Origin: Klebsormidium nitens
Taxonomy: Eukaryota > Plantae > Klebsormidiophyceae
DNA: 64,000 bases
Direction: 5' to 3'
Assembly: GCA_000708835.1 (NCBI GenBank)
Contig: DF237111.1
Location: 1-64,000, forward strand
In this document: one piece after another, positions 7,801 to 62,700 of the stretch
Layout of the letters: each line of letters opens with the position of its first letter
How positions within the stretch are numbered: the first letter of the stretch is position 1
Translations under genes and position numbers: made by a program
Notes under the pieces: generated by a model
The model's input: only the letters and a program-made list of their open reading frames with translations
The model's database searches: none
What the model was told of the DNA's origin: nothing

Positions 7801-10025
7801 CGTTCGTAAGCGGCACCTGCTCGGCCAACTCCTGCTTTACATTGGGATTGGCTTCCATCTCAAAGCGGAGGTCTAACACGTGGCAAACGTAACACTCAGC
7901 AGCGTCGTTTCCAGACATCCTATAAGTTCCGCGTCCCTTGTTTTCGTCCAGTGCCCCAACCCCCCTGCCGTCGGAACCCCAAATTGCGGAGCTGGCTCTG
8001 CGGCCCCCCCGACCACGCCTGCCCCAACCGTCGCTCCCCCGACCACTCCCGCCCCGACCGTTCCGGTTCCGGCCCCGACCACCTCCGCCCCAACCGTTCC
8101 GGTTCCGGCCCCGACCACTTCGGCCCCAGTACTTCCGGCTTCGACCACTCCGGCCTCCCCCGGCGGTTCCGCCAACCCGGGACCGGACGGCACGTGCAGC
8201 TCTTTGCCCGCCACCCCCAACCAGTGCTACACGTCGGACGGAACGAGGTCCATCTGCTGCGCCGGCCAGGTGGGTTATTCTTCCATTGTTGTGCATGAGG
8301 CTGTCAATTGCGAACTTAGAAAGAGGACTCTAGGGCTCCAGTCACCATCGCGGGCAGCCTGTCAGATTCAGAAGAAAAGGTGCTCGACGAGAACGGGATA
8401 AGGAGCGAGCTGAGTCAGGTCAAGGTCGACATGAAGTACTCGTCTTGGATCCCCTAGTCAGTACGCACGTTTTGGGCCTCTTGACACAACGGGTCTTTTG
8501 ACCAACCGCTGGGCGAATGTGTCAAAGCAAAAGTTCGGAAACGCGGCGACGCGCTTACACAAATCTCGTGCAAAAGTCGCCGGCGAAGTCTAGAGGCCGA
8601 CTTTGCGGTTGGCAGAGAGCAATTGATGCGACCTCCATCGGATGGTCCGGAGGGTCGAAGTTGGGGGCTGCCCCCATCGATCGACGGTTCTGAACTTTTG
8701 TTGCCGGCACCACGAGCGTGCGCACTGACTGCCCCAGTTGTACTGACGTCCGCCAAAAGCAAGTGCTGGCCGGTCAAGCGTATTGTGACCTCTCTGACGT
8801 CGTTGACATCAAGTACTGTCTCCACGCCGACTGATTGTGTCTTGTAGCAGTAGCAGAATCGATTAACGGAAACATTCAGAACCTTCTGAGTGGACACGTT
8901 AAGCACCTTTTGATCAAACCTCCAAGAACCTCAGCTGGCTATCTGCAAGACTTGGTTGGATTTCCGATACTCAATATGCAGAATGCTACTCACACTCAGT
9001 CGCCCACGGTCAAAGGACAAGGGGCTAAACTGGAGTCACTCTTTAAATTGTATCGTACTTCTTAACCCGATGTAACCTTGTCTTTTCTCAGTGCCCCAAC
9101 CCGCCCGCCGTTGGCAACCCGAGCTGCGGAGCGGGCAGCCCCGCCGCCCCCACCCCGACCAACCCCGCGCCTGCAGCGACAAACCCGGCGCCTAACCCCA
9201 CCACTAACCCGACCACTCCCGCGCCCGTGGTCCCGGCCCCTACCACCCCCGGTGTAAACACCCCGGCCCCCACGTCAGCTTCGGGGACACCAAATGTCTT
9301 CCCCGCAGGGGGCGTGTGCAACCCTTCGTCGTCGTTTCCGAACCAGGTGCGCGCAACTACTAGCCGGGTGTTTCGCTCTTTGTCTCTTTCCAAATTCTGC
9401 GGCCACGCTAGCTTTTCCTCTTCGCGAACCGCCCGTGCTTTTCTTTCTCGCAGTTGCGCTGTGTATTGTTCCGGCTTTCTCGCGTCTGCCCAATCTGGGG
9501 AATTGCTGAATTGTGCCTTTGGATCTTCGGGTGTGATCTTGATCGATGAGATTCTTGGAGGTGCCCGTCTGACGGCGTGCTCGTACTGTGACGAAACATC
9601 GCGTAAGAGATGGAGATTTTCTCTCGTACCTTCCATTTGAGGAAGGTTAAGATGCATTCTACTATTAACAAAGGCGCCAGGGGATGGTAGGGTTGGTCGG
9701 GTGCTTAAGGTGGTTTTGGTGCATAGAGCGTAAATTTTGGGTCAAGTTTTAGTCCGAATGCGTGGATTACTTGATCGTTAAGTGAAATGAAAGGGTATTT
9801 GAAGTGGGAGCTACCAATATTGGTGAATTGTGCTCCTCAACGACTAGCAACACTGCGTCCCGTTAGGCTTGAGAATCCTCAATAAGTTGTGACAATTACC
9901 GTTGTTGTTGATTGCCGTTACGGTTGTTGTTATGTGCGCAGTGCTTCAACGCCGACGGTTCCGCTTTCACCTGCTGCTCGGGACCTTGCCCCGGGACGCC
10001 CGGCAACACTCCGTCCTGTACCTAA
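1828..10025 (+). CDS. Secreted pepsin-family (A1) aspartic protease with C-terminal Pro/Thr linkers and three six-Cys modules, about 759 aa
   Basis: Signal peptide, catalytic LIVDTGS (exon 1) and IVDS|GTT (exons 2/3), plus GTLFLGG, FPTLTLQL, RIVGDSF and VVFDAENSRVGFA. Exons: 1828-2589, 3631-3898, 4538-4649, 5017-5036, 5546-5769, 6224-6284, 6876-7051, 7952-8269, 9092-9346, 9942-10025. All introns are GT-AG, phases are consistent, and the total is 2280 nt. Confidence 0.92.
7051..7170. repeat. 10-bp-period minisatellite (consensus GCTGGGTTTG), about 12 degenerate units, starting at the intron 7 donor
   Basis: Successive 10-mers include gctgggtttg, gctgggttta, gctgggtttt, gctgagtttg and gccggatttc. 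Confidence 0.9.
9681..9753 (+). repeat. Decayed copy of the G-rich core family (see 28345 and 58457) in the last protease intron
   Basis: gggatggtagggttggtcgggtgcttaaggtggttttggtgcatagagcg...ttttagt aligns colinearly with the core gggacgggtagggttagtttggtggttagggtgggtgcgggtgcggagcg...ttttagt. No clear arms. Confidence 0.55.
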
Positions 10026-11926: not shown

Positions 11927-12517
11927 CGCTGATTACACCGCGGAGGCCCAACAGTAGATCAAGTTCACCTGTCCTTCAAAGTCGCAGTCGATTCTGCTCG
12001 GGACCTGCTTCACCGTACTAGCGGCCCTCTCCCTCAGCGTCTCGGACGTCAAGAGGCTTTGGAATGGTTAACCACTTACCGAGAACTGTTACTGCAAAGC
12101 CCCACCCTCAAAACTCACAGCCGCGACCCAAGCGCCGTACGTGCTCGCCTTTGCGGACTCTGCTCATCTGCTCCGTCCGACTCGAACACGCGCCCGCGCC
12201 TCCCCGACCGCCGCCACCTGACTCCGCAAACCCTGCGCAAAGCCGGCCGCCGTTCGTGTATAGGTACGTGGATCTAGACACGCGTGTGCAATGGTATCTA
12301 CCAATCATTGCATGACGCCGCCATAATCTTTGTCATCGTAACATGTCCGGCAGCTGCCGTCCAGTTTTGCTTTGGCGGCGCGTCCGCGATCGGTCCCAGA
12401 TCGATCCTTAGCCCTCCTCCAAAACAAACTTGAGCCCGTCTGATCGAGGTGGTCAACCAAAGATAGACGTCACCTTGCCTGCACAACAGAAACGCTGAAA
12501 CTCGCACGCGCGCGGTG

Positions 12518-13438
12518 ATGGCGGGTGGCATCGAGAGCCTCGGGAACGACGTCCTTGTCCTGATTTTGAACAAGCTCTGTCAGCAGGACCCCCCTTCTTT
12601 GCTGCGCGCCACGTGTGCTAGCAAAGCCTTGCTCAGCGCCGCCGCAGAAGCCCCCCACTTCTGGAGAAGGGCCTTTTTAGACTTCGCAGAGAACCCACAA
12701 AACGTGCTTCATCTGTCTTCCGAGGAGGAGGAGTTGGACAGAGAAGTTGAAGCCTTTGGTGGGTACCGGCGCTTGCTAACTGCCCGCTGGAGGACCGATG
12801 CAGGATACCCTGAACAAAGCCGGGTTGAATCGGCGTTGGGCGATCATGAACGTCCCGCTTTTGGCTACCATTTACAGACCAAGTGCAGCTTTCTACTCCT
12901 GGTTAGGCTGCAAGAAAGGGCTCTCGCGTTCAGCTTTCGCCCTTTGCAACGTGCCGCAAGGAGCATTGAAGGGTTTGATGGCTGGAAACCGGGCGGCTGG
13001 GAGTCCCTCGCTCTTCAGCCTCTGATTCCGTTCCAAGAAGTAGAAAGTGCGATGGTGAAAGCTACGGAAGAGTGTCCGAGAGCATCGGGTGCAATAGATC
13101 CCGGCCTTCTGTACGAACCTGAGATGTTTGCACTTGAAATTCACGCGCAAAGCGAAGGTGACGGTCAACTTTGGCATGGCACTTTCGTCGTCGCAAGAGT
13201 GGAAGACAATCTCCTGTCCACCAAGAGGTCTGGTGATCCTCTGGAGTGGTTCCGGTTGTGCTTTGGCACAATCCAGCCCGGACTTCGCCACAGAGGAAAT
13301 GGAAGAACGAGAGGGGTATGGGCGTATCTTCATTTCAACACTTCTGAGTGTCCTGGCTGGGGTTTCGAGTGGGAGGTACGTTTAGGACGCTCACAATTAG
13401 CCCAGTCTTCCCATAAGGAGAGTATCTTTGTCTACTAG
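12518..13438 (+). CDS. Intronless F-box-like protein with an unrecognised C-terminal domain, 306 aa
   Basis: The N-terminal LGNDVLVLILNKL...LLRATCASKALLSAA...FWRRAF has the F-box pattern. The ORF is long and uninterrupted, and has a paralog at 14976. Confidence 0.8.
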   Translation: MAGGIESLGNDVLVLILNKLCQQDPPSLLRATCASKALLSAAAEAPHFWRRAFLDFAENPQNVLHLSSEEEELDREVEAFGGYRRLLTARWRTDAGYPEQSRVESALGDHERPAFGYHLQTKCSFLLLVRLQERALAFSFRPLQRAARSIEGFDGWKPGGWESLALQPLIPFQEVESAMVKATEECPRASGAIDPGLLYEPEMFALEIHAQSEGDGQLWHGTFVVARVEDNLLSTKRSGDPLEWFRLCFGTIQPGLRHRGNGRTRGVWAYLHFNTSECPGWGFEWEVRLGRSQLAQSSHKESIFVY

Positions 13439-14975
13439 CGAGATTTTACACAAAAAGGCGAAGGTTTCGTTGCAACGGCTAGCTCTGATTCCAGATATTC
13501 ATCTGCAACAGTGCTCGTTCGAAGGGTAAGCTTTGTTGCTCGGTCTAGCGTGTAGCCAACAAGATGCATAAACTGGATGCGGAAGCATATGGTGCATACG
13601 AAGTGTATATGGATAGACATTCCGAGCAACTTTCCAAGAGTGTTTCCAATTGCGTGTGTTGCTCACAAGGGAATTGATTTCTGGTGGAATCACAACAGAT
13701 CGTCAAGATGAACGAACGTTCCCCGCTCGTTCCTTCAGCCTGTCAAAGCTCTGATGCCTTCAAGTCACTCACTGCACGTGGCTTACGAAAAATGTTGAAA
13801 GGCGTTCGATAGGCCGGCCCCCCATCTCCCGAGGACCGTAGTACGCGCCCATAAAGGAAGCCGCTTATACTCTCTCCAGGCTGCTGCCTTGATTTAATGT
13901 ATAAGCTTTCGGCTCTTGTTGGGCCCGCATCTCACAAAGTCTGCGAAGCTAGCTGGACGGGTGAAAGTGTGTGGCTATGTTGCGGCCCAAACCGACCTGG
14001 ATTGCCCAAACCGTGACGTTACCCACAAGAACAATGGTCCCTATGCGTGTTGACAGTCCGCTCTACTTCGGACTTGTAACCCTCAGCGGGTTAGTATGAA
14101 AGAGAAGCGCTAGCGTGCGCAACGGTAAATGAAGTAGATTCGAGAATGACAATGACGAATGAAGGAAGAGATAACAAGCGAGCTTGAAGAAAAAGCTTTC
14201 CAAGTATTGCCCGGTGTTTTTTCCAACAATTTAGAGCATCGAAGTTGATGACGAATGCAATTAGGCGGAACACAATGAGCGGCAGGGATACTAAAGGGAT
14301 ACCCATGCGGAAAGGGTACTGGAATTGCTGCAGGAATAATGTCAGAAGCCTCATACCGTACTACGTCCGGTGCCATTTGTGCCTGTTTCTACACAGCGGG
14401 TGCGGCAATCTCCGCTTCGAGATCTGTTCCCAGGAGCGAATCTTTTGCTAAGGCGGTCCCTTGGAAAAGCCTGCATCCAAACAATCAGTTTGAAAAATAT
14501 TAGGCCGTAGCAAATGATTTTCTGGCCGCAAACCCGAAAACCCACCTCTTTAAAAATACGTCGGCTGCATGGATTTGTTCACTCTCGCCATCAGAATGAA
14601 AACGGCGACCCTGTACTGCTTTTCTCGGTGTTCAAAGGCCTGCGCTGCTAGTAGTGCTACGCTTGAGCTGTCTGGAATGGTTTGGCAGAAAATCGTTCCG
14701 TCGAGTCTGATTCCGCTCAACGTTCCGTCGCCGCTAGGACGCGCGGCTCCATGTCTCGCGCATGGGAACATTGTGGGCCGACGTAACGTGCGGAGGCGGG
14801 AACGTCGCGCGCGCTCACGACGAACACGCAAACCTTTCGCGTTTGGAAGGATTCGGGGACTGCTTTCAGGCTTACTTGAGCCCGTCGGGGAATCAGCCAA
14901 GGACTGTAGAATCGATGTTTTTTCCTCTAACAACCCGCTGCAATACAGAATCGCTGAAAGTTCGCATGCGAGGCG

Positions 14976-15846
14976 ATGGCGGCTGGCATTGAGATCCTCG
15001 GGAACGACGTCCTTCTCGTGATTTTGAACAAGCTCTATGAGCAGGACCTTTCTTCCTTGTTGCGCGCCACGTGTGCCAGTAAAGCCTTGCTCAGCGCCGC
15101 TGCAGAAGCCCCCAACTTCTGGAGAAGGGTCTTTTTGGCCGTCCCAGAGAACCCACAAAGCGGAACTCATCTGTCTCCTGAGGAGGAGGAGTTGGACAGA
15201 GCAGTCGAAGCCTTTGGTGGGTACCGGCGCTTGCTGACCGCCCGCTGGAGCACTGACGCAGTATCCCGTGAACAAAGCCAGGTTGAATCGACGTTGAACA
15301 ATCATAGGGAACCCCTGTTTGAGGTTCACCTAGCGGCAAAGTGCAGCATTCTGGTCCTGGTCAGGCTGGAAGAGACGGCTTTCGCCTTCGCCCTTCTCAG
15401 CGTGCGACAAGGAGGATAGAAGGGCTCGGTGGTTGGCATCCGGGCAAATGCTGGGAGTCCCTCACCCTTCAGCCACTACTTCCGGCCCACGAACTGAACA
15501 GTGCGTTAATGAAAGCTTTGCGGCCAGGAGCTTTGAGTGCAACATATCCGGCTTTCTGTTCGACCCTGAGACGTTTTCAGTTGAGATCCACACGCGAATG
15601 GATGGAGACGGTCAGCTTTGGCAAGGCACTTTTGACGGCTTAAGATGGGGAGACAATCTCCTGTCCACCAAGGGGTCTGGTGATCCGCTGGAGTGGTTTC
15701 GCTTGTACGCCTTTGGCGAGATCCAGCCCGGAATTTGCCACAGGGGAGATGTAGGAGTGAGAGGGGTATGGGGGTATCTTCGTTTCAATACTTACGGGTG
15801 TCCTGGCTGGAGTTTTGACTGGGAAATACAGGACGCTGACGATTAG
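14976..15846 (+). pseudogene. Tandem paralog of the 12518 F-box-like gene with two frameshifts
   Basis: Homology runs through three frames in turn: ORF 14976 to about 15385; ORF 15341 (RRIEGLGGWHPGKCWESLTLQPL) to about 15540; ORF 15433 (FLFDPETFSVEIH...DNLLSTKGSGDPLEWFRL...GVWGYLRFNTYGCPGWSFDW). Confidence 0.85.
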
Positions 15847-18456
15847 CCCAGGCTTCTTAGAGTACTAAAGGACTTCCTCGATGCCTCATAGCGAAATCTT
15901 TGCGCAAGAAACAAAGGCTTCGCTTTTCTGCTCAACGGTTGGATCTGATTGGCAACAATTTTATCTTCAGTTGCCCGTCCGAAGGTCAAGTTCGAGGATG
16001 AACTGCTCGGTCCAACATATAGTCAACAAGATGCATAAGCTGGCAATGCACCGGCAGCCTATGGGGCATACGCATACACTCTCCAAGCGAGCTGCGGCCG
16101 TCGACTTATAGGTATGTGATCCGCATGGCAGTCTCTGCCAGCAGTATCTTAGTACGCCGCAGGAGAAAGACTTGTAGTACCCGCCGTCAAATACGACATA
16201 CACGGGCTTTCTTATGGTCAAATAACGAGAGTGTGCAATTTTTGAAAATGGCCTCTTGCTTCTCCTTCTTTGCTCTCGAGAAAATGACGGATGGTCGCTC
16301 GAGCGATCTTCTTTCTCCTCATGTCATTGCGTATGTTGCTCATAAGGGGTTGGATTTTTGGTGGAATCATAACAGATTTGCAAAGATGAGCGTACGTTTC
16401 CCGCTCGTCTCTTCAGCCGGTAAAGCTGCAGATTAACGCTTTTCGATGCCGTCAAGTGTTTTCATGCTTCAAGTGCTCACGAACAACTTTCTGGGAAGCG
16501 CTCGATGGGCCGGCCCCGTTTTCTGAGCAGACCGTTTGACGCCCCCAGAAATAACTGTCGCTTTTGATAATCTACTTCTCAAGCTTCGCTACACGATTCT
16601 ACATACGTGCTGGGCGATGGCCATGGCACCGAGGGCTGCATGAGCTTTCGGGCAAGATATTGCGCAATCATTGAGATCATGTGGCATCGTACGTATATCA
16701 AGGCCGGGCCCTCCCCCTGCTGCCACGTCACTCCTGCGTGCCAAAATATATGTGCGCGGTTGCGGCCACTACTCCTGTCCTCAACTGATGGATAATCATC
16801 TTGATTCACCCCCTTGGAAAAGCTGCCTACACCCCTAAGGTCGCCCCTTAGTTGGGCATGTCGGAAAAGTCTGAGAAGTCAACTGAAGGGAGGAAAGTGG
16901 GCCGAGTGTGCCCAAACATTTTATGTCAGTTGCAAGTCGCAAGCTCTTCCTATACGAATGGCAGAGCCGGAAGCATTCTTATCAACAATCGAGTTACATA
17001 CACGGTTAAGGTTTGCGACGCACTAAGGCTAGCACGCCCGGACGTGAATTTGCCCCGATTGCCAGGTCTTGCAGATTTGCGATCGAGTGACTCCGTTGAT
17101 CGACGTACCGATTTTGTGAATATGCCGTAATGATTTGAAACCAGTGAAATGCGTAAGAGAATAAATATGTTATGTCCCTTGCATATATTAGCACATGCAA
17201 GCGGCCGTGCCAGCGCAATATTCAGTGTGCCACGTAAGGTGGTACATGACACTACTGATTTCTGTCACGCTAGCTGCACAATTGAACCCAGTCGATCTCT
17301 TATGTCTGAACACATACTGCATGAAATTATATATACCGTGCATAGCGCGTCGAATGGCATCGAACAATCACGCTGAAATGAACACGACTTCATCCGATAC
17401 TAATTCCATGATAACCTCTGCAACTTATTTAGTGCCGGTAACTCAAGGGATTAGATAGAGATCGGGGCATCTGGTTGCGGGGCAATGATCAGGTTTGCTT
17501 GGTTAATGATTGTCTCTATACTAATGATCCATGCACAAAGCTCAACTGAACTCGGGATGTCAGACTCGCGTTTAGTTGCAACATGTTCCTACGGAAAATC
17601 ATTGCGCATCTAGTTGGTCACCTCTGCAATGGTCCGAGCAGATGAGACCGTGGATCTTCCGACCGAGGATGCAAGTAATCCAAGGTCACGTTCACTCTTA
17701 ATCGTGACCTGAATGATACGCTTGAGGTCAACCAGAAAACTTTTATGGAGTTGTGCCAATGACAAATTTTGGATGCATTGGCCCTCGAGAAGCTAGATAC
17801 TACCGTCTCACCAGACAGTTGGCAGTCAAATTATGCTATCGAATGCTACGCTACCGCTCGCATACACTGTTTCCTATGCACTTGGCAGGGCCAGCAAGCA
17901 CTAACCAGCAACCGGACCGCTTGGCCAGCTGACAGTATACAAGCTCACAGCCTATATGCATGGCGCCAAAGCTTTGGCACACCAAACTTGTTCCACCAAG
18001 CTCTCCTTGTCATCCCCTGTCGTTTTTCTAAGCCGCAGTAACCGAGCTCAACCCCTGCGTCGCTGAGCAAGGGTCACAATCTACTCGCGCCCCTTCCAGG
18101 AATCCTCCCATCCCAACGCCGACATGTTCGCTCTCGGGCAATTGCGCGAATCATTGCACTCCTCAACCGTCTGTGTTACTATGATACAGGTCCTTCAAAG
18201 TCCTTACCTCAAGCCATTCACGTGCATGGATTAGCCGCAGCGATAAATCCACACTCGTAACCTGTCTATCTCTCCTTCCCCCGGGTTAGTTAGCTCCTGT
18301 CTATAGCAGGACTCCCCCACTTGTCCACGGCTTTGAAACCTCCGTATTCACACTCTCTTATATCGATCTTCCAGTTCCGCCGGGGCCTTTCCCTTCCGAT
18401 CGCCCCCCTTTCTCCAAGATCACCGCCACCCCCGTTCCAGCTGGCACCATCAGCTG

Positions 18457-25866: not shown

Positions 25867-28344
25867 CTTTCGCCGCAGTAAGGTTAGGCAAGGAGAGGAT
25901 TTTGTGATTGGCTACTTGAAGGTGGTGAGTTCATCTGGCGGAGAAACGGCCAGCCGAATACAGCTGCATGAAGGGAATGTGCAATCAGCTCCGATGTGAC
26001 CCTACTTTCCTTATGGGATCGGGGCCCTGGCACACTGCCCAGCTAGGACGGCATTGTTGGATGCAGTTGTCTGACACCATTGGATTCAGCAAAATCAGCA
26101 AGGACAACGATGGCCGCTGGCCCCGATCGTGAGCTCGTCCTTTTGGAAAGAGAGGACAAGAAGGATTGACCCAGCCAGCCGCCTTCGGAATCAGGAATTG
26201 ATTGAAAGCCTATCGAGCATGCTAGCAAGGCTGCAACTTCAAGCTTGTGAAGGTGACGCCGCGCAGACTTTTCTCTTCAGCTTCAGCATGGCCTGCTGAT
26301 TGCCGCGATTCTCTCTTGCATGGTGATTGGCCGGCGTGGCGACTGTCCATGCCTCGTTAGGTCTTTACAGTACCGAATAAACCCTATTCGTACGGCCGCT
26401 AATTACGTTGGTACGACTGTGTCAGTAGGTCCGACAGGTGGATTATTGAAAGATACGAGACGTCAGGATTCGACGCCGAAAGTGTAGTTGACTTATGTTT
26501 TGCAGCAAACCTGGAACGTAGCGATCACGTCGAAGAATGTTTCGGGGCGGAGCAAACTTTCGGACAGAGGCTCGATTTACCGGTCAAATAACCGGTATAA
26601 CCTGTTCTCAAAATGTCAAAAAAGTGGTTTGGATATCCTTCTCAAACCGGGACAGGGCCCGGTCATAGGGCGGTACATCTGGTCTACCTAGCTGGGGCCG
26701 GGCACGCAGGGCTTGCCGGTTACCGGTGCTTCTTGTACGCTGGGTTTACCTGGCCCAGGCCCAGGGCCAGGGGCTTTAGGAGAATCCCGAGATCTCGGAA
26801 GCTGGAGTTGTATGAGATTGTACCATCCATGACCATGACCAAGCAACGTACCTACCGTACTTTACGATGATACCATGCCGCGTGGGTGTTTCTTTCTCCC
26901 GAAAAATGCGCTACACCGTCGATTTCAAAGCCTTACCTATGCAGTCCGTCGATGACTGTAGAAAACCAACGCTTTGGAACCAATGGATGCTGTGCGTATG
27001 ATAAAAGCTCGTATAAAGCTTGATGCGTGAATTTTACTAGTCACATTTCAAAGCATCGATCTCAAGACCGATGGATGACTCGTAGAGCTCTCTTTAATCT
27101 TGTTTATTGATGCGGCAAAATGCCTTGCGAAGCACAATAAGCCTTCCGTTTGAAAAATAAGCTCTGGGTATAACCTTATGGTACGCTCAAGTTTTTGCTC
27201 GCCTATGGATGATGTCCAATCAGTGTACACCATCAAGCAATTATTGCATGAAGTAAACCGCGCCGGGGACCCGGCTACCGCACGTTAGTACGTCGCAGTC
27301 GGCACGGGAGGCGGCGCAGTCAGCCTGCCAAGCAGAATGTGGCAGAACTTACTAAGAAGCCTGACCTGGGCGCTCCACAGAATAGGTATCTCAGCTTCCT
27401 ACAGGTACCGTACCCACCTAGCCTGGCACAAATGTCGTCAGTACTTACTGGTCGACGAAGGTATATCTGCATTTTGCCAGCACAGTGCTGAGCACTGGCA
27501 AAGCCCGCGCCGTCACAAAAGCATCCCGATTCCCCGTAGACTGATACTGTAAGCCAATATTACTGTAGGACACAAAGTTTCCAGCTCTCAAAGTGTACCA
27601 TACCACCATTATTCTCTTATACAAGCATGATATTTAGGTACTATCGTTTTGCTGTTAGGCCAGCAAAGAAGACTCAGCTGCCTTCAAGAACTAGGTATAG
27701 CGAGGCGCCATGGCAGTACTACTACCAGCGCTATCATGAATGCATCTGCAACGCCCCCGTGGCGGCCCCGTGCCTTGCATATTCCGGTGTGGTGCTGTTG
27801 GCTGGAGTTGTTCAAGGTTGGAAATGACTTTTGTGTGCAAACAGATTAACGGAGGAGTGTATATCCTCTGCCTCAGGACGAGCCGCTCCATGCAGTTGTG
27901 ACAATGCCCATGCCGGCGCCTAGTGCATTGTCTGCATGTATGATAACCGAGTGTCTTCGGTACAGTCACAGTGCCGGCGCCAGTACCTGGAACTGGTAGC
28001 AGCACATTGATAGCAGTTCGAGGGCCGCGCCTGGATCAGCAACCTCTCCTTCAATCAGTAGCGCTGAGCCAACGTACGTGCAGATCTGGAGGACCTATGC
28101 AGACAGGCAGCATGCTTCTCGGAACAGGCTGTATAGCGTTCTAACCTAAATACTTCAGACGATTAATGAAAGTTGTTGAGTGCTCTTGAAATGGACGGAC
28201 TCAGCAGCATGCGATGGGCAATGGACGGTAGTCTTGAGTCACTGACAGCTACTACTATTTGACAACCTGCTTCTGGTCAAGGCAATCCATCCGTTGGCCC
28301 GGAACAGCAAAAATCAGGAGTCATGACAATTGAGGGATAGTAAG

Positions 28345-28487
28345 CTTTAAGAATAGTAAGCTGTGAGTTAGCTCACCAGCCTGGGACAGGTAGGTTAATT
28401 TGGGGGTTAGGGTGGGTACAGGTGCGGAGCGGGTAGGTGCTAAAAGTTACGATTTTAGTGTTTCGTTTGAGCTTACTATTCCTAAAG
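28345..28487 (+). mobile_element. MITE-like unit P: G-rich core (28383-28459) flanked by 18-bp inverted arms
   Basis: ctttaagaatagtaagct (28345-28362) matches the reverse complement of agcttactattcctaaag (28470-28487) at 17/18. The core gggacaggtaggttaatttgggggttagggtgggtacaggtgcggagcggg...ttttagt is homologous to the 58.5 kb cores. Confidence 0.7.
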
Positions 28488-29182
28488 TGTCGCGTCATAA
28501 AAACTAGGAATTTCTCCTGATTGTTTTACAATTTCGTACCCCAAAATTGGATTTTCACTTCCGAAAAGATCCACAGGGATATGTCGTTGTACATGGCCTG
28601 AACATTTAATCTGCATTGATTTCATGCATCGCTGAGCTGACCAGTGTTCGTACAGTGGCTGTAGACGTTTGCAGCTCGCGGACTCCAGTTTGGTGATAGG
28701 TGCATCTACTTGAGTCCACGTCAATTCCGCAGCTTGAGTCCGCTTTGTTGGTCATAGACCAGTAGGTGGAAGCCAATCTTCCTGATCACGATTGACAACA
28801 CTTCGACGCGTATTCATCCAATCCCCAAAAGCGAAGTCGCTGACCTAATATCCGAAACATTGAAACCGATAAGCATGATACTCCGGAACCAGAGTGTTTT
28901 TAAGCTCGTGACGTGAGCAGAGCCTGGCACTGAAAGAACAATTTGCAAAGCTCTTTGAAATATATATAAGACTTGAAGCCGACTTCTTCGTGCAGATACA
29001 TTACAGGCTTCGTAAGCAGGATAGAAGATTGAGGTCAACTTTTAGACAAAGCCGTTTGGGGGCGTCAGTACCCCCTGATCCTCCGGTCAGTCGAGATGAA
29101 GGTTCTTCCTTCCACTCCACGTGAGCTGCACGAATCACCTAGGATCACGCCTAGGATAGTTCGTGTACGAAGTTAGAACCCT

Positions 29183-34706: not shown

Positions 34707-37700
34707 CTTCCCACTCCTAGCAGGGCTCGTACGGACATGAGCACTGCGAGGCCTATCCAGACGCCTTTAATGCCCAGGGACTGGGGGGTGAAGAACATCA
34801 CCGCCATCGCAGGGATCGCCGCGAGCACCTGAGCAGGACATGCGTATTGTTCAAGACTCTAGGGTATATGCCGTTTGGGGGTTGAGGATGAGCGGACCTA
34901 AAACTTTTGATATTGGGGGTGCGAGTGAGAAAGGTCCCGTCCCTTGCGCGGGATCTCTGAGTACGTCCGAGGTCTTTCAAATTGGTAGGAACGCGTCGCT
35001 TAAACCGTAGCCTTGATTCCGTCTAGGTGGAACAGTCACGGGCATGTGAGATTCGCGCTGCTAGGTACACCGAAGCGGGGTAAAGTCAACCGGAATGAAA
35101 GAGTGAGAACTACGATAACAAAACAGATTACCTGATGTCTCAAGAGGAGTCCAGTGGTGATCCAATGCTGTCCTGGAAATTCAATAACCAATCCAGTCTC
35201 CACAAATCCTGAGCGCTGCTGATGGCTGAAACGAAGGACAGAAGAAGAGGCTCCAAAGACGAAACGCGCCTCACCGAACAGAGACTGTTCCTTCAAAGAT
35301 CACAAGAAGTACATATCTCGTTTTATCAATCAGCTAACGGATGGGGGGGACTTTGCATAAGGGCGCCCAGACTGCAAGCGTCGTTCTCTTTGGCGGGCCT
35401 GACCAACTTGCTAATCGCAAGGCTGTCTTTCGCCTTTATGCTTTCTCAGCTTCCGCCTGACCCATTAAGATTGGCCCCTCTGGCAGACAAGTTGAACACG
35501 ACGGATCTGCGTGCGAGCAGCGAAGAAGCGCGAGCAGCAAAGGGCTTATTCATACCGGTCCTTCGCTTATCGTAACCTGGGCGCTGTAGACATGGTCGGT
35601 CGCTCTCGCGAGCAGCAAAGGGCTTATTCACACCCGCTTTCAACCCACTGTAATCCCCATAATTACCACAACTGGGCGCAGTCAGGACGTCGGCCGCTTT
35701 AGCGAGCAACCAAGGCCTTCTTCTCAACCGTGCATTTCCACTTACCATAACCTGGGCGCTGTAGACGAAGTCTGACGCTCCGTAGTGCAGGCCGTCCCAC
35801 ACAAAGGCGAGCGCGTTGACGGGCTGAGTCAGCACGATGAAGGGGAGAAGGGACGCGATGATCGCCAGGACCGCGGGGTCTTGCGTGAAGGCCTGAGAGA
35901 AGGTATGCGAGCTTCACACTTTGCCTCAGGTACCAAAGAGAAGGCATGGGTTCATAAGTAGAATCGCTCACTGAAATATACGCCGTTTGCTTAAAGGATG
36001 TGACTGACGAGTGCGCATATTTGTCAAGCCAAAACAGCGAGGGCGGCATCGAAGTCTGCAAGCATACTCGTTCTTCCAGACTTTGAATTCTCAGGGCATG
36101 CAGCCCCGTCAACAGTCACGCGAACAACGCTCGTACCTCTTTCGGGAATCTTTCATTCAAATGACGAGTATACGAAAACATTACTCGTGTATCGAGGAAG
36201 AAATGAAGAGTAAGACGTTTTTCAAGGGACATAGCGAGCAAGTCCGCATAGGCGTTCTGGCAAACGAAAGGGTGCGGCAAGTCGCAACTTGACTATACAG
36301 GAAAGGGGCAAGAAAGACAGTGAAAAGGAGCATAAATTGGCTTTGCACCTAGCATCGCTTCGTTTCTAAAATAGTACCAAAATGTACCTCGAAAAAACAG
36401 ACAACGCAGCTTTGCATCAAAGGATAGCTTCTCTTACCAAGGGTATAGCGTATTGCCCAAAGAGGAACACTGCGGCCATGACCCCGCCCATGACGAGCCC
36501 CAGCTTCATGATCCGCTTCGCGACCGTGTCTATCAGCGTGACGTCATCCTGCGCAAACGCGCGTGCCAGGATGGTCTGCCCCGCGAGAGCCACCGAGTCG
36601 GACAGGAGCGACGCCGCGAGCCAGACCTGAAAAGACGGTCAAGTAGGGAAGGTTATTGGAAAAGATAGTAAAGGATAGAAGGCGGCTGGAAAAGATGGTA
36701 AAGAAGAGAGGCTTGTGAAGGCACCTTCCGCAAAGGCTCCTGCAACTTTCGCAACTCGGAAGCTTAACGAATCAGGGTTAAATATGGATGGGATGAGATT
36801 CCTCCTCCGAACAGCTTCCGAATTTGTTTCTCGCTTCCGTACACTGCATTAGAAATCCGTAGCAAGATGCTCTCGTTAGACATTCACCGACCTTTTTTTA
36901 GGATTCATTCTCATCATAACATTGCCTTTCAAAGCGGAAGGGGGCAGAAGCTTCTTCTACGGTGCCCTGAGCTGACCATGCAAACCCATGCAAACCTATC
37001 AGAGAAAGAGAAGGAGATCATGCGACCTCTTGGCCAAACTGCAGATTCTGATTGCGGACACTCTGATAATCTTCGGTCTACGGATCTTTAAGAGTCGGTC
37101 TACGGATCTTCAAACACGACCACCCGTATGCAAGTACGGTGTTCCGCCATGCTGGCCGTTCCCAACCGTAATCCAGCCACTATTTTCTCATCTAGGTCAA
37201 CAAGCCCTTAACCAGATCATGAACTCGATCTTCTGATTTCATGCCTCTGGCCAACCTGCCTCGTAGTATCTTTTGCCGCGGCTCGAACAGTGGCCGCAAC
37301 TTTCGAGGTCGCTTGCATGAAGCTGGAAGCAGCCAGTGAGTCAAGTGTCCAAGCTTTGACCCCTCCGCAGGAACTCAACGGTCTATCTGGACAGCGTTGA
37401 ACGTCCATAACCACCCATAACTACCCATAACCACCCATAATTAAACGATTATTATGTTACAATCCCACAGCCCACCTGTATGCAAATCTGGTGTGCTGCC
37501 ATGCTGGCCGTTCCCGTTCTCGCCGCCATGGACGTCGCTAACGACATGGTAAAGAGGCTCGCGAGCGTCCGCCCGAGAAGCACCCCGCCTGAGAAAGACA
37601 TTCAGGAAGGGGTGAGCTGGCATTATGTCGTCCGTCAATGAAGCCAAGTAACGTCGGTAATGACATGGTGAACAAGTTCGCGAGCGTCCGCCCGAGAAGC

Positions 37701-45098: not shown

Positions 45099-45170
45099 CG
45101 TGGTCAACCTATTACGTACTAGAGTATATAGTAGCTACTATATACTCTAGTACGTAATAGGTTGACCACG
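45099..45170. repeat. Perfect 72-bp palindrome with no spacer
   Basis: cgtggtcaacctattacgtactagagtatatagtag (36 nt) is followed immediately by its exact reverse complement. The centre lies between 45134 and 45135. Confidence 0.98.
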
Positions 45171-49999: not shown

Positions 50000-52206
50000 G
50001 GTGCCCGGGCAACTGGCTGCAGTTGACGAAACCATCTTCTTCTGTTGTAGGTTGCTCCAATTCAACGGACTGGCTCCTTCCCTTTCCTCTAGCTGACCAA
50101 GAACATTTGCAATGGGCTTTCAAGTTTCAGCGGTCAGACTAGACTTATGAGAAGGAATGTCTTTTTACCACCTTTCCAAGGAGGTAGGTGCTGCCACTCA
50201 TGACACCATGCTTTCGACGCATTCCGCGAATACAAGTTCAACTTCAAGCAGCAAGACGTCGATCCAGATTGATCGGATTCAGAGCCAAAATGCACTGAAC
50301 GGAAGGTTTGATAGCGCGCGCAACATCTGTCTGTTGACGCGCCTCGAATGAAGTGGCAGTTGTGTCTTTTCGGATTTCAGGCAGTCTGCAGACCTTCTCA
50401 ACTTTCGGCTCAGCAGAGCAAGAACAAAGCTAGCAAAGCTACATAAGAGCTACATAGGGAGGGGCGGCCACTCCCCTATAAAGGTGGAATATAGCCGCGT
50501 CTGCTCGTCCTGTTTTGGGACCCTATGCTAAAACCGCGCCAGTCTTTTCGGGCACTCTTTCTATAACGGCTTGGGCCATTTTTTGACCCCTATTCGTAAA
50601 ACGGAACAGACGCAATTCTAGCAAGATTCCCCCTCAAAGGTACTGTAAAACGTGGAGCCGTTTCTCTCATATAATATCTCAGGTTTTTCATGCATGGCTG
50701 TTGATAATCCATCGGACAAGCTGGAAATGTAGGATAAAATGTGTCGGCTTATTAAACTGGAAGGAGGCATGCCTCCGTTGGCCCACCGGTATATCGGTGG
50801 CCTTATTATTTAGTGTCTTGGGGATAACCCAGGCGCACTTCCCCACCCCCTTTACCTATAACAACCGTTATAGAGCTCGGCCCAATTTCCAGAACCTTTG
50901 GATCGACGCGGCTCCCTTCCAAATACGCTATCTCCAGGGGGAGAGTGACCGCCCCTCCCTACATAGGTATCCTGACATCGTTCCAACGGAAGTAATTCAA
51001 TTAACTTTGATCATACTTCTGTCATTCTGTAGGCACTGTTCGACTGAGGTCTGTGGCCCAGGGGTGAAAACGGAGCTTGAATGTAAGCTTCTCTACGAGA
51101 TTGATTAGGCAATTGCGACATGAAGAGGTGCACCAGAGAACCAAAATCCGAAGGCTTGCCACATGACACATTGACTTTGAAGGGCTTTACTAGGCGCTAA
51201 GCAACTGAGTTTGCGCCCCCTCTTGCGGCCTCTAGCATGAGTTACGTTGGGGGGAGCGAGAGAGGATCAAGACAGTGCCGATTTTCGAATTCTCAACCTG
51301 CAAAAATTTCACTGCCTGAGCTCGCATGAACACGAATGCAGCTCAAGGGTCTGGGCAACGGCTGGGTGTGCAATGAGGGAGACATGTCAAGGAATTAAAG
51401 TGGATTGAAGTATAATGAATATCTAGACGCTTCCGTACAAGCAACAAAAGTCTCAGAAAGCAGATAACTTGTGTACGGCGCTAGTGGGGTTGGTGCCAAA
51501 GAGAGGATCAGGCGTTAGTGTGCTAACGGTGAGTGGCCTCCAAATTGCTTGAGTGACAAAGCTTTACTTTGCTCAATCTCAAGCTGGGCATAAATTGTCA
51601 CCGGCTGCGAAGATTCTTTGAAAGTCAATTCAACATTCTGTGCAGTCACAGTCAGGCCGATCATAAAAAGTGCCTCACTCGGCACCACCAACAGCTCACC
51701 TAGGATGAACTGCATGTGCGTCCTTTCATTGAAAACCAATCAGTCATTTGGCAAAGCAATGCCGGAGTGGAAAGCAGTTGGACCGACAGCTGAACTGAAT
51801 TCATTCTGGCCTTGAGGGGTTTCAGCTTCCTAGTTCTTCTTGCATGCTGCCTACCCTTCCAGTGGTTTTCAAAGGCTGGCATGATGCAAGCTTGAGCCCC
51901 GTTAAGCAATGGATTTCAGCCCTTGACATGCGTTTCAAGAAACATCAGCACCCTTGATTCGGCGTTTTGTATGTTAGATCAGATGTAGCAGATCCAATTG
52001 GTGCAGTGGCTCAGGATTCACAACTTGGACAACCAACCCCTCTGTTCATATCTGGCTGCAGCTCTTCTAGCTTCGAGCGACCTGTCGGACTAGTCTCTCA
52101 GCCTTTCAAGTTTGCACAGGGCTTTCTTCGTGGGGACTTGAGCGATGCACCAAGCAAGCGGATAGGCCAACAAACAATCGCCTGAGACTGCCGAGGGCGT
52201 CAGAAG

Positions 52207-57806: not shown

Positions 57807-58456
57807 GGCTGGAGTCTGGCGGGGACTGCTGAAGGCTGGCGCTCAGATCTGGGGAGTGCGCGCTTGTACTAGAGGCTAGGCTAGGTCAATCGAAAAACGA
57901 CTCAATGGAAGAAGCTGCGGCTGATCAGAGGTTGCGGCAAAGGATCTCGCGGGCCTCTGCCAGCTCAAATCCTCTTGCTCACTGGCAAGGCGGTGCTCCG
58001 CTGCAGCTTTGACGTTGAAAGACAGTCTGGCAGTGGCAGTGACAAAACCTTGGGATGTATGTACCTACAATCAGGATGCAGATACGCCCTAACGTGTACC
58101 TCCTGGTTCCTCAGCACTGCACGAAATTGTGTAACAGTTAGTGCGTAGGTAGTACGTATTACGTACACTCAGCTCTGTACGGGGTCACCCACGTACGACC
58201 AAAGCGTACGCGTATGATGCGGACCGGTAGCTCGATCGAGTTACGACTCACGAGTACCTTAAAATACCCCGGCTACTCAAATAGCTGATTTCGCTATCTA
58301 TAGCATGCCCGGTAATTGGGTCGTGACATGCGACAGGCTGTCATTAATGCGCGCTGATTGCTGACGTCAGTTGCGACTTCGCCGCAAATTAGCCATGCGA
58401 ATCGAACGATCGATACTGGCCAGCCGCCAGTGGCAACGCTCGCTAATTGATCCCGA

Positions 58457-58619
58457 TCGATGTAGTGAACAGTAACAGCCAGTGAACAGTAACGGAGACG
58501 GGTAGGGTTAGTTAGGGGGTTAGGGTGGGTACGGGTGCGGAGCGGGTGTTTCCTTAGGTTAGGGTTTTTAGTAACCCCAAAATGCGTACTGTTCACTGGC
58601 TTGCTGTTCACTGGATCGA
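58457..58619 (+). mobile_element. MITE-like unit Q: G-rich core (58494-58572) flanked by about 35-bp inverted arms
   Basis: gccagtgaacagta (58478-58491) and tactgttcactggc (58587-58600) form a perfect 14-bp inverted repeat. It extends outward to tcgat with 3 mismatches and a 2-nt indel. Confidence 0.75.
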
Positions 58620-58627
58620 GAAACACC

Positions 58628-58806
58628 GCTAATTGCACTAAAAGCCGCTTGCACTCAGATACACAAGTCCCGGGCGCCCAAACTAAAATGCCTAACCAAA
58701 CAGATCACGCGCTCCGCACCCGCACCCACCCTAACCACCAAACTAACCCTACCCGTCCCCCGGTGCTTATCTTAGCTTAGTGCAAGCTGCTCTTAGTGCA
58801 TTAAGC
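58628..58806 (-). mobile_element. MITE-like unit R: the same core in reverse orientation (58682-58760), flanked by different 31-bp inverted arms
   Basis: gctaattgcactaaaagccgcttgcactcag (58628-58658) and cttagtgcaagctgctcttagtgcattaagc (58776-58806) are inverted at 26/31. The core matches unit Q at 47/51 over its first 51 nt. Confidence 0.78.
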
Positions 58807-59729
58807 TACCGTTGCCGGAATAATCGAACGGAGATCTGGCGCCCGCAGCGAGTTGATCTAAGCCTGGCCAGTGGCCACCCACGCCTGACACCCTCATTGC
58901 ACCCTAGACCGATATTAAGCGATAGGTATACATGCAGTCATGACTTGGACGAAGTTTCACGAAGAGCCGAGGCTACAAACAAGTATAGTGTCCAGCACTG
59001 CACATCACAGCTACTTCTGGCAGATCGTCATTGCTAATTGGTGCAAACCTTGCGAGTCAACGTTTGGCGCCGCGGGCAGCAAGTACCGCTAGTGAATGAC
59101 AAAAAGGTCGCCCAGTAATGATGAACTTCATGTCAGAGTAGCTGGCGTTGGCGCCGTATCATGACGCGGCTTGTCACTTCCAGCGGTGGTCATTCATCCA
59201 AGGTTCTGAGGCCGTAGCAGCGTACGCTCTATGCATCCACGTCAGGAGCAGCACTCTTTCGGAGTCCCTTCAACCTTTCCCTTGCAGAGAAAGCCCGTCG
59301 AAGGTTTGCCAAACCAGCTGTACAACGTAACATCCACGAGTGACGGCACAATTTGGCGGCGCCGCTAGTATCGGTGAATGTTAATGTCGGACAAGCGCGC
59401 AACGTCTAGCTGCAACATCAAACTAGAGGAATGCGCGATATAAGTCCGCCGAATTAAGCCTTCGCTGTCTTGTACTGCTCCCGACAAATTTGGGCTATGG
59501 CGAAAACTCATTAAGTCAACCTCGTGCTGATGCAATATGTCATTGACGCTCAACCGTGCGACTCCCGACACAGTGCAGCGCGGCCGGCTTACTCTCAAAA
59601 CTGATCATCATAGAGCCAGCTTTTATGTTGATGATGTTATGTACATAAAGGATGGAAAATGGGTCCCAATAAAAACCGTTCCCAATGGTCTGATTAAGCT
59701 CTCCGAGTCGTACTTATAATAACGGCCTG

Positions 59730-62700
59730 TCAAGAATACTCCGAGGCCAGCTCTGCTAACCCTTCCTTCATGCTGACCACCCGGCTTGTATCCAAGCTCC
59801 TTTTGGATCTTCGCTGTCTTCACCGTGACGTCACGTGCCACGTAAGCAAGGATCTGCCGGCTGACCAGCGGTTCCCGGGTGACCCCATAACCCAGAATCG
59901 GAAGACTTTCCAGGAACCACTCGACTCCCCACAACAGCCAAAGGGGGACCGTTCCGGTCGGGGTAGCGACCCCCGGTTGCGAGCAGACGTACCACGTGAT
60001 GAAGTCCTTCCAAAGCTCCGCTTTGCCGTCAGTAACGAAGTAACTTCTGCCTCCTGCACGAGGGGATAAAAATGAAGAAGCTCAGTAATGATTGCTTGAA
60101 AAGGGCGACGTGATGGAGTCCTTCCAGAGCTTGGCTTTGCCGTCAGTGACGAAGTAAGTTCTGCCGCCTGCACGGAAAAATGCTGCTCAATAGTGATCGC
60201 TTGAGAAGGGCCACGTGACGAAGAAACTCCTGCATGAAGTAAGAATCAGTACGATGCTTAGAAAGAATCGATTGAGAAGAACTACTTTACAACGTTCTTC
60301 CAGAGCCCCGCTTTTCCATCTGTGACAGATCTACTTTTCCCTTCTGCAGTTAGAAGGCTCATCAGTGCTCAGAAAAGATTGCTTGTGACGATTGCGAAGG
60401 GCGATGATTGCCTTCTGTCAACAGCGGCGACGTGCCGTGGCTTGCGACAGCAGACAGACCTCGGCGGCGTTCAGATAGAAACAACTACGTAACCATTTCG
60501 AGGCTTATTTCATAAGATTATCAGACAGCCGGAATCTTGGCTGTCAGTCGTTCCCTTACCTTAAAACCCAAAAGTAGAGTGCTGACAGCTTCTTGACGAA
60601 GCTCTTTCCCTTGAAAGCCAAGACGTTGTCGCTGATCAGATGTGTTCAAAGACCGGGAAAACTGAATCTTCGCGTGCTTTGTGCGACTTATGACACTGTT
60701 CGTCGGGTACTCGTGTCGCGAATGCGTTGCGAAACCTGCCGCGCCTCTTACGAGAGCCACAAAGCTGACCGGGTAAGCCAACTAGACTTCGCAACTGCCC
60801 ATCACCAGTTCGCAGCTTTGGCAGGATCTGATCAAACTAGGCATGCGAAAATACGCACCTACACCTTTGACGGTCGCGGCGAGGCGCAGCGCATGGACGG
60901 CGTTAGAGACGTGGGTTGTCGCTACTCTGGCAAGCGGCGTAGTCCATCGGAAGAGACCCGCCTGGATGATCTTGGTGAAGCCAGGCTTGAGAAGCGTGTC
61001 GCCACGACCCCAGCAAAAGCTGGGCTTGATCACGACGACTGCACACGACGAGAGAACGGCGCCCGATTTGGTGTGGTTTCTGCTCGGCTGATCGACCTTC
61101 GGGTGCTTCCATGCTTAGCAGACGCAGTTCTTATCCGGAGCTGGATTTCGCTTCAAAAACGAACGGGCCTCCCTGCGTGTGTCACCAGGCAAAGTGCGAT
61201 GCGGGAAATGGAAAAATAAGCGTTTGAACGTGTTTCGCGCAAGCGCTTCGTACAGATGAGACTGCGCAAACTTGACTGCAACGATGCGCAGTGAACGACT
61301 TGAATCAGAACCAATCCGCTCAAAGAGCGCTACGTACAGTGCTTCACGTGCAGTGGCAAGGAAGTCACACCTTGGAACGGTACATACGAAGAAAGTGCAA
61401 GCACCGACAACTTTGCCTCGTCAAACTGAAAGGACGGGATTAGCTCTCAACTTCCTCTGAGGGACGCCCTAATTGATGATGGAAAAGCGCTTTCAAGCAA
61501 TGGCAGGACGCCAGTAAAGTGTGGATCCTACTCACCCTGAAAGCAGCTAGAGCACATTCGCTTTAGTCACGTACAGCTCGCTGGAAAGAGGGAGACCAGT
61601 CGGAAAGCCCCACCTTCTCGTTCGAAGCCTCGAAAACGAAAGCTTGCTTCACGGGGAAATGGACGCGCGGAAAGGTGTCTACCTTCAAAACGTGGTGAGT
61701 CGTTTGCAGCCAGAGCTACTTTCTCCGCTTCAGCCTTGCTCTTGGAATAAGGAGCCCAATCGGGAGGGTCCATTGGGTCCGCCTCGCTGGCGTTGCCAAT
61801 TGCACCAGACGCCTGAGAAAGAATGTGGGCTCCTCGTAAAGTTCTGAATAAAGCTCGAAAGTGAGGTTAAAGCCAGCCTCTTGTTTTGCAGATTGTGGGT
61901 TGCAGAGGCGTGGGTAAACGAGAGCCCAACGCCTCGAGCTACCAAAGTGTTGAAAGACCTCCAGCAGCACGCGTGCAGGGCTTTCCCTGCAAACGAGCGG
62001 GTACGCTTGTTCTGATTGGTCGCTAGTCGAATGAACGGAGGTTAGTAGCACCTTAGATTCGCCGAAGGCCTTCCATCTTGGAGCTCACAACAAAGAAAGG
62101 CAAAGGTAAAGCTGCGCTTTTGACAAGCTCTATCCTAAGCGAGGCTGACAAGATGACTCGCAGAGTGCTGAAGTGTGAATTTCACCTTAATGTTTGCAAA
62201 GATCGTGCTGACGTGCACAAAACGAGGCACGCCAGCTGCCTTTGCCGTGTCGACCATACTTCTGGTGCCCTCAATTGGGAAGTCTGCCCACTTCCCCCAA
62301 CTTTGGACCTTGGCTGCCAGATGAATGACAGCATCGCACCCCCGCATTCCTGCAGCAAAAAGGGGCTACTTACTTAGTGTCCATCCACAACACCACATAG
62401 AAAAGAAACTGCGTTCTTCCTTGCCCTTTACTGATGGGAAAACATCAAAGTCGACAGCCTGATTCAACTGTCCTTGAAAGCTCAAAGTGGCAAGTGATTC
62501 CACACAGAGAAAGAGCTTTTATACAGAAGTACATGCACCTTCGTGGATGTAACAGAGAAATCTGCTCATGTTTGCGCTTTAGCTGCAGTACAGAGGAGGT
62601 ACTTGCTTTCTCTGATGGCCCCTAGACTGATTACATGCATGTTCGCATGCAACGTGAGCTTCCTTTTGCAGCTAGCTTGACAACTACCTTAACCGTCACC

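Follow-up and report, generated by a model that had tools for sequence, protein, structure and literature searches.

Among the described systems closest to the elements reported here, transposons of the MULE type make target-site duplications of 8-10 bp, and subterminal repeats raise Muta1 binding and excision (PMC5499845). Tm1, a Mutator/Foldback family of root-knot nematodes that belongs to the Phantom subclass, has 9-bp duplications that enclose asymmetric 7-bp ends, and its arms contain repeated motifs (PMC3169594). In the CMITEs of Acropora corals, which are short and non-coding, a 75-nt interior is better conserved across families than the inverted ends; these elements can nest and build new elements, and it has been proposed that the interior may have a role in transposition (PMC2872659). 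Paper searches found no description in the literature of an element family of this kind from Klebsormidium. Here, we describe such elements in the first 64,000 nt of contig DF237111.1 of Klebsormidium nitens (the window) and conclude that they are an unusual form of an already known type of transposon rather than a new type of element.

A core profile search identified three copies of a G-rich core in the 64-kb window, named Q, R and P, and the invariant 17-nt motif of this core has three matches in the window versus 0.04 expected from shuffles. The features of the three elements and of their surroundings are the following.

58450-58626 (+), element Q, 177 bp, the younger copy, inside an arm of R, delimited by its flanking 9-bp direct repeat and by folding
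58441-58449 (+), target-site duplication of Q, left copy, CGCTAATTG, part of the R arm
58627-58635 (+), target-site duplication of Q, right copy
58457-58491 (+), left arm of Q, with the doubled motif AGTGAACAG at 58464 and 58481
58587-58619 (-), right arm of Q, with doubled motif
58494-58572 (+), core of Q, G-rich and conserved, from the profile search
58409-58821 (-), element R including the nested Q, outer limits tentative, firm arm stem 58432-58816
58432-58661 (-), R arm split by Q into 58432-58449 and 58636-58661
58773-58816 (-), intact R arm, with a doubled motif around TGCACT
58682-58760 (-), core of R, from the profile search
58400-58408 (+), candidate target-site duplication of R, left copy, AATCGAACG, 23 nt outside the stem, tentative
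58822-58830 (+), candidate target-site duplication of R, right copy, 5 nt outside the stem, tentative
28318-28498 (+), element P, 181 bp, arms 28325-28362 and 28470-28491
28382-28459 (+), core of P, from the profile search
28309-28317 (+), degenerate target-site duplication of P, left copy, matching the right copy (28499-28507) at 7/9 positions
58219-58368 (no strand assigned), conserved non-coding block in the host context, 81% identical to another Klebsormidium
about 57816-59760 (-), last annotated intron of GAQ83789.1, holding Q and R, from mapping the protein exon by exon

A reading of this DNA made from the sequence alone (the sequence-only reading) had placed Q and R tail to tail, 8 bp apart, and had seen no target-site duplication. 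The 8-bp gap consists of the 7-nt end of Q and the first base of its duplication, and Q lies within an arm of R. Q inserted with a 9-bp duplication, the two copies of which are identical at all nine positions and bound the element exactly; random placement in comparable zones gives an exact 9-mer match in 0.2-1.6% of cases. When Q and one copy of the repeat are excised in silico, the interrupted R arm matches the other R arm at 34 of 41 positions, ungapped. Since this removal restores the R arm, we conclude that Q jumped into it and that the two units are nested; the intact arm of R documents the empty site of Q. The arms of Q are perfectly paired over 15 bp and match at 30/35 positions overall, with 7 non-inverted bases beyond them at each end (58450-58456 and 58620-58626). 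Q folds back with a z score of -4.9, and the 7 bases at either end stay unpaired.

The layout of P is the one found in Q: a 9-bp duplication, 7 non-inverted bases, an arm with a doubled motif, the core, the second arm, 7 bases and the duplication. Its arms match at 17/18 and 19/22 positions, folding again leaves 7 bases unpaired at either end, and its best flanking match falls in the 7/7 register expected from Q, where the probability of such a match by chance is 0.0017 for a single fixed register. In R, the arms match at 28/34 positions, and the candidate duplication is 9/9 but asymmetric with respect to the stem. As a second, chance-level 9-mer match occurs near R, the outer limits of this element are tentative. 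Between its candidate duplication and the stem there are about 18 extra bases (58409-58431) with a small hairpin (58415-58431), and these could be an excision footprint. Standard target-site duplications, which the sequence-only reading had regarded as evidence against its proposal of a new element family, are thus found at Q and probably at P and R. Its arm counts, on the other hand, are borne out by our measurements, both for Q (given as 14 bp perfect, extending to about 35 bp) and for R (26/31), and its 17/18 for P was found again.

As MITE criteria, we used a size below 500 bp, absence of coding capacity, terminal or subterminal inverted repeats, a target-site duplication and evidence of insertion. 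All three elements are non-coding and small, R measuring about 227 bp without Q, and their inverted repeats are subterminal, lying 7 nt from the ends in Q and P. Duplications are present at 9/9 positions in Q, 7/9 in P and, tentatively, 9/9 in R, and insertion is documented by the rebuilt empty site of Q and by the presence or absence of the core between orthologous introns. The copy number is three in 64 kb, and no two of these copies have the same arms. The ORF spanning Q matched no Pfam family and, as the sequence-only reading had noted, the elements encode no enzyme: a Pfam scan of 47 longer ORFs of the window (at least 130 aa) detected no transposase family.

The core is the conserved part of these elements. 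Q and R agree at 47/51 positions, the count of the sequence-only reading, which was obtained again on realignment; Q and P as well as R and P agree at 44/50, so that the K. nitens cores are 88-92% identical to each other; the number of copies behind the statistics is three to six. The core has the same placement and orientation in all three elements and ends in the same T-rich stretch. Conservation is strongest in a GC-rich motif that closes the G-rich stretch on its 3' side, rather than in the TTAGGG words. These words and the G-rich strand are shared with interstitial telomeric repeats. The telomere repeat of Klebsormidium, however, is TTTTAGGG (PMC3622300), a unit that occurs in none of the six cores examined, and one of the six has no TTAGGG at all. 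With no tandem array called at the cores by a tandem-repeat scan and a different invariant core motif, an identity with interstitial telomeric repeats was rejected, and the telomere likeness is superficial. The cores had also been called G-quadruplex-capable, which by pattern holds for Q, the only core with the canonical four-G-run arrangement. The maxima of a G4Hunter-type score are 1.4-1.9 in the cores, and 2.8% of the bins in the window score at least 1.5. Quadruplex formation by the cores is possible; judged from sequence, the quadruplex pattern is not their conserved trait. An Rfam scan matched no family and a tRNA scan was empty.

The arms, by comparison, are not significantly similar among Q, R, P and a fourth copy from the other Klebsormidium (p 0.09-0.97), and no arm type is common to any two copies examined. 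This agrees with the claim that the arm sequences are unrelated, and the doubled motifs reported for each arm set were found as well. A common arm motif, TAA..GC, had been spotted by eye; it was not significant and was dropped. The sequence-only reading was right in its general picture of a dispersed family of mobile elements in which the interior is conserved and the inverted arms diverge. It had presented this arrangement as a reversal of the usual MITE pattern; the pattern is real, but it is not new, as the coral CMITEs have it (PMC2872659).

Regarding the known systems, the elements have the 9-bp duplication, the composite arms made of repeated motifs and the sub-TIRs with short non-inverted ends of Mutator/Foldback transposons. 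They resemble Tm1 in the 9-bp duplication, the 7-bp non-inverted ends, the repeat-motif arms and the MITE-sized non-autonomous members. In Tm1, however, the arm and end motifs are common and the interiors vary, whereas in Klebsormidium the interior is common and the arms and 7-base ends vary; moreover, a coding member with a transposase is known in Tm1, while the Klebsormidium elements are known from non-autonomous copies alone. With Muta1 and Muta1NA1 of Aedes aegypti they have in common the MULE fold-back ends, the subterminal repeats (transposase-binding in Muta1) and a duplication of 8-9 bp (PMC5499845), but in Muta1 the terminal motif is symmetric and palindromic and each end has as many as nine repeats, in contrast to two repeats per arm and non-inverted ends in Klebsormidium. 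The better conservation of the interior relative to the inverted ends is a likeness to the CMITEs. These, however, have piggyBac partners, duplicate TTAA and share CC[C/T]T at their termini, whereas in the Klebsormidium elements the 9-bp duplications are of unrelated sequence, a common terminal motif is absent, the composite arms are longer and the core is G-rich. In the absence of TTAA duplications and CC[C/T]T termini, membership in the CMITEs was ruled out. Non-autonomous elements of the Helentron/HINE type have subterminal repeats and a 3' hairpin and make no target duplication. An identity with them was rejected, given the 9-bp duplication of Q and the presence of a small hairpin only at the outer end of R and not in Q.

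The gene model hosting Q and R, GAQ83789.1 (57153-63471, minus strand), comprises a 3-beta-HSD/epimerase part and a DUF1295 part with a 1.9-kb intron between them. In the assignment of the window to DF237111.1, this protein maps exon by exon, and locus L003 is 100% identical to the window over 16.8 kb. The DUF1295 part, an intronless ORF, has stand-alone homologs of about 50% identity, the named ones being mostly bacterial. Upstream of this part sits the conserved block at 58219-58368, a possible promoter, and the annotation may have joined two separate genes. The gap between the block and the outer end of R is about 40 bp, and homology with the other Klebsormidium (run SRR23617307, comparison locus L001) breaks off at the left copy of the candidate duplication of R, at about 58408. 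At the Q/R-orthologous position of that locus, adjoining the same conserved block, there is a different, coreless fold-back (L001:9100-9420), and the position is a possible insertion hotspot. Within the window, Q and R are an ordinary nested MITE pair adjoining a conserved non-coding block.

Several further features of the window were recorded. A perfect 72-bp palindrome with 36-bp arms and no spacer lies at 45099-45170. At 50450-50966, 27-bp inverted arms (85%) are 463 bp apart, with a short word at both outer ends, and this is possibly another non-autonomous element. At 12467-16400 there is a tandem gene duplicate with a spacing of 2.45 kb and 78-87% identity; the gene belongs to a large Klebsormidium family, and its K. 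nitens relatives are labelled F-box proteins. The region 6924-9250 is rich in repeats, with a 10-bp tandem array (7053-7130), a 36-bp array (8037-8128) and dispersed duplicates of 135 bp and 82 bp.

Outside the window, the fourth arm set surrounds a core at L001:3217-3302 in the other Klebsormidium, where a clean flanking duplication is absent. An intron of the same Klebsormidium holds an armless core (L005:11856-11931) and the K. nitens ortholog (about 36640-36720 of the window) has no core; it is in these orthologous introns that presence and absence differ between the two Klebsormidium. No core was found at the sites of the other Klebsormidium orthologous to Q/R and P, where the DNA is too diverged for a clean empty-site reading. 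A metagenome pattern scan for the core gave one match (L002), and the coreless fold-back of L001 has pieces of 42 bp and 17 bp that also occur around this copy. Pattern scans for the core gave no match in viral contigs or in bacterial and archaeal genomes, and blastn of the core against phages gave none. Another 126.8 kb of K. nitens DNA yielded one weak, rearranged and armless match (L006:6044-6100), and from this single match the core density is estimated at 0.2-44 per Mb. The surrounding segment (L006:5960-6140, minus strand) is distantly related to the core but rearranged; it lacks arms and contains a 14-bp direct repeat. Neither new intact copies nor arm matches turned up in five further loci of K. 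nitens or in three taken from other samples; a 15/15 match to the left end of P (L006:2468-2482) has no partner arm and was taken as chance. The armless copies of L005 and L006 are the most diverged cores. That a core is common to two Klebsormidium lineages whose introns are no longer alignable hints at selection on it.

Taken together, we interpret Q, R and P as short non-autonomous cut-and-paste transposons (fold-back MITEs), probably moved in trans by DDE transposases of the Mutator/IS256 type (MULE). A MULE-type transposase encoded elsewhere would bind the repeated motifs of the arms and cut 7 bases outside the stem, and the target would be cut with a stagger of 9 bp. More tentatively, the different arms might represent subfamilies paired with different transposases, close to the third option of the sequence-only reading (several inverted-repeat subfamilies with one core). 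Equally tentatively, the core might be an inherited cis element kept because it aids transposition, as proposed for the coral CMITEs, perhaps by binding the transposase or a host factor. In favor of the MULE interpretation, we count the 9-bp repeat of Q together with the restoration of the R arm, the 7/7 register of P, the 7 unpaired bases at the ends, the likeness of duplication length, ends and repeated arm motifs to Tm1 and other MULEs, the occurrence of cores at different sites in two Klebsormidium and the lack of an element-encoded transposase. Against it are counted the lack of an autonomous partner with matching ends among the window ORFs scanned and the loci compared, the lack of a repeated arm type, the asymmetric duplication of R, the L001 copy without a clean duplication, the armless copies of L005 and L006, and the arm length of 22-41 bp, which is short for fold-back elements.

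The armless cores could also mean that the core is a separately spreading module, which came to occupy the centers of unrelated fold-back MITEs through insertion, template switching or gene conversion between elements, the arms alone setting mobility. The pieces common to the coreless fold-back of L001 and the L002 surroundings, as well as the unrelated arms, are consistent with this. We consider it unlikely, if the foremost of the alternatives, since core position, orientation and T-rich end are constant in Q, R and P, no duplication is found around the core itself, and the armless copies, given their divergence, may be decayed; moreover, it would account for the origin of the core and not for the movement of Q. 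Also unlikely is that specificity resides in the core: one Mutator-type transposase or a host protein would bind it as an internal enhancer, and the ends would need only self-complementarity at the right distance, such that arms could drift or be swapped while paired arms stay matched. Similarly unlikely is that another DDE superfamily moves the elements, namely hAT (8-bp duplication) or P/Galileo-type fold-backs. One base of the 9-bp match could be fortuitous, the duplication then being of 8 bp, and fold-back structure arose under several transposases (PMC3169594), but it is the 9-bp reading that leads to symmetric 7/7 ends in Q and P, and the short, conserved terminal inverted repeats of hAT elements are absent.

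The sequence-only reading had further suggested that arms are made from the target at insertion, or that an enzyme of a new kind recognizes the core plus any closing stem. Every arm pair compared differs, as would fit, and in the closest case the Q arm shows a weak alignment to 58410-58433, on the left of Q, with a score of 20 and a p of 0.10-0.27. However, the empty site of Q, as given by the other arm of R, has no significant match to the Q arm, and for all three elements the reconstructed empty site is no more similar to the arms than random window DNA is (p 0.10-0.66). Since ordinary direct duplications flank the elements, an inverted target duplication is unsupported, and these proposals are highly improbable.

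If specificity did reside in the core, this would be a eukaryotic cut-and-paste element recognized mainly from inside. Under the favored MULE interpretation, the Klebsormidium elements are, after the coral CMITEs, a second and independent case of a conserved interior with differing ends, here with Mutator-type anatomy and no common terminal motif. As to the reason for which such interiors are conserved, the Klebsormidium family offers a short, testable core.
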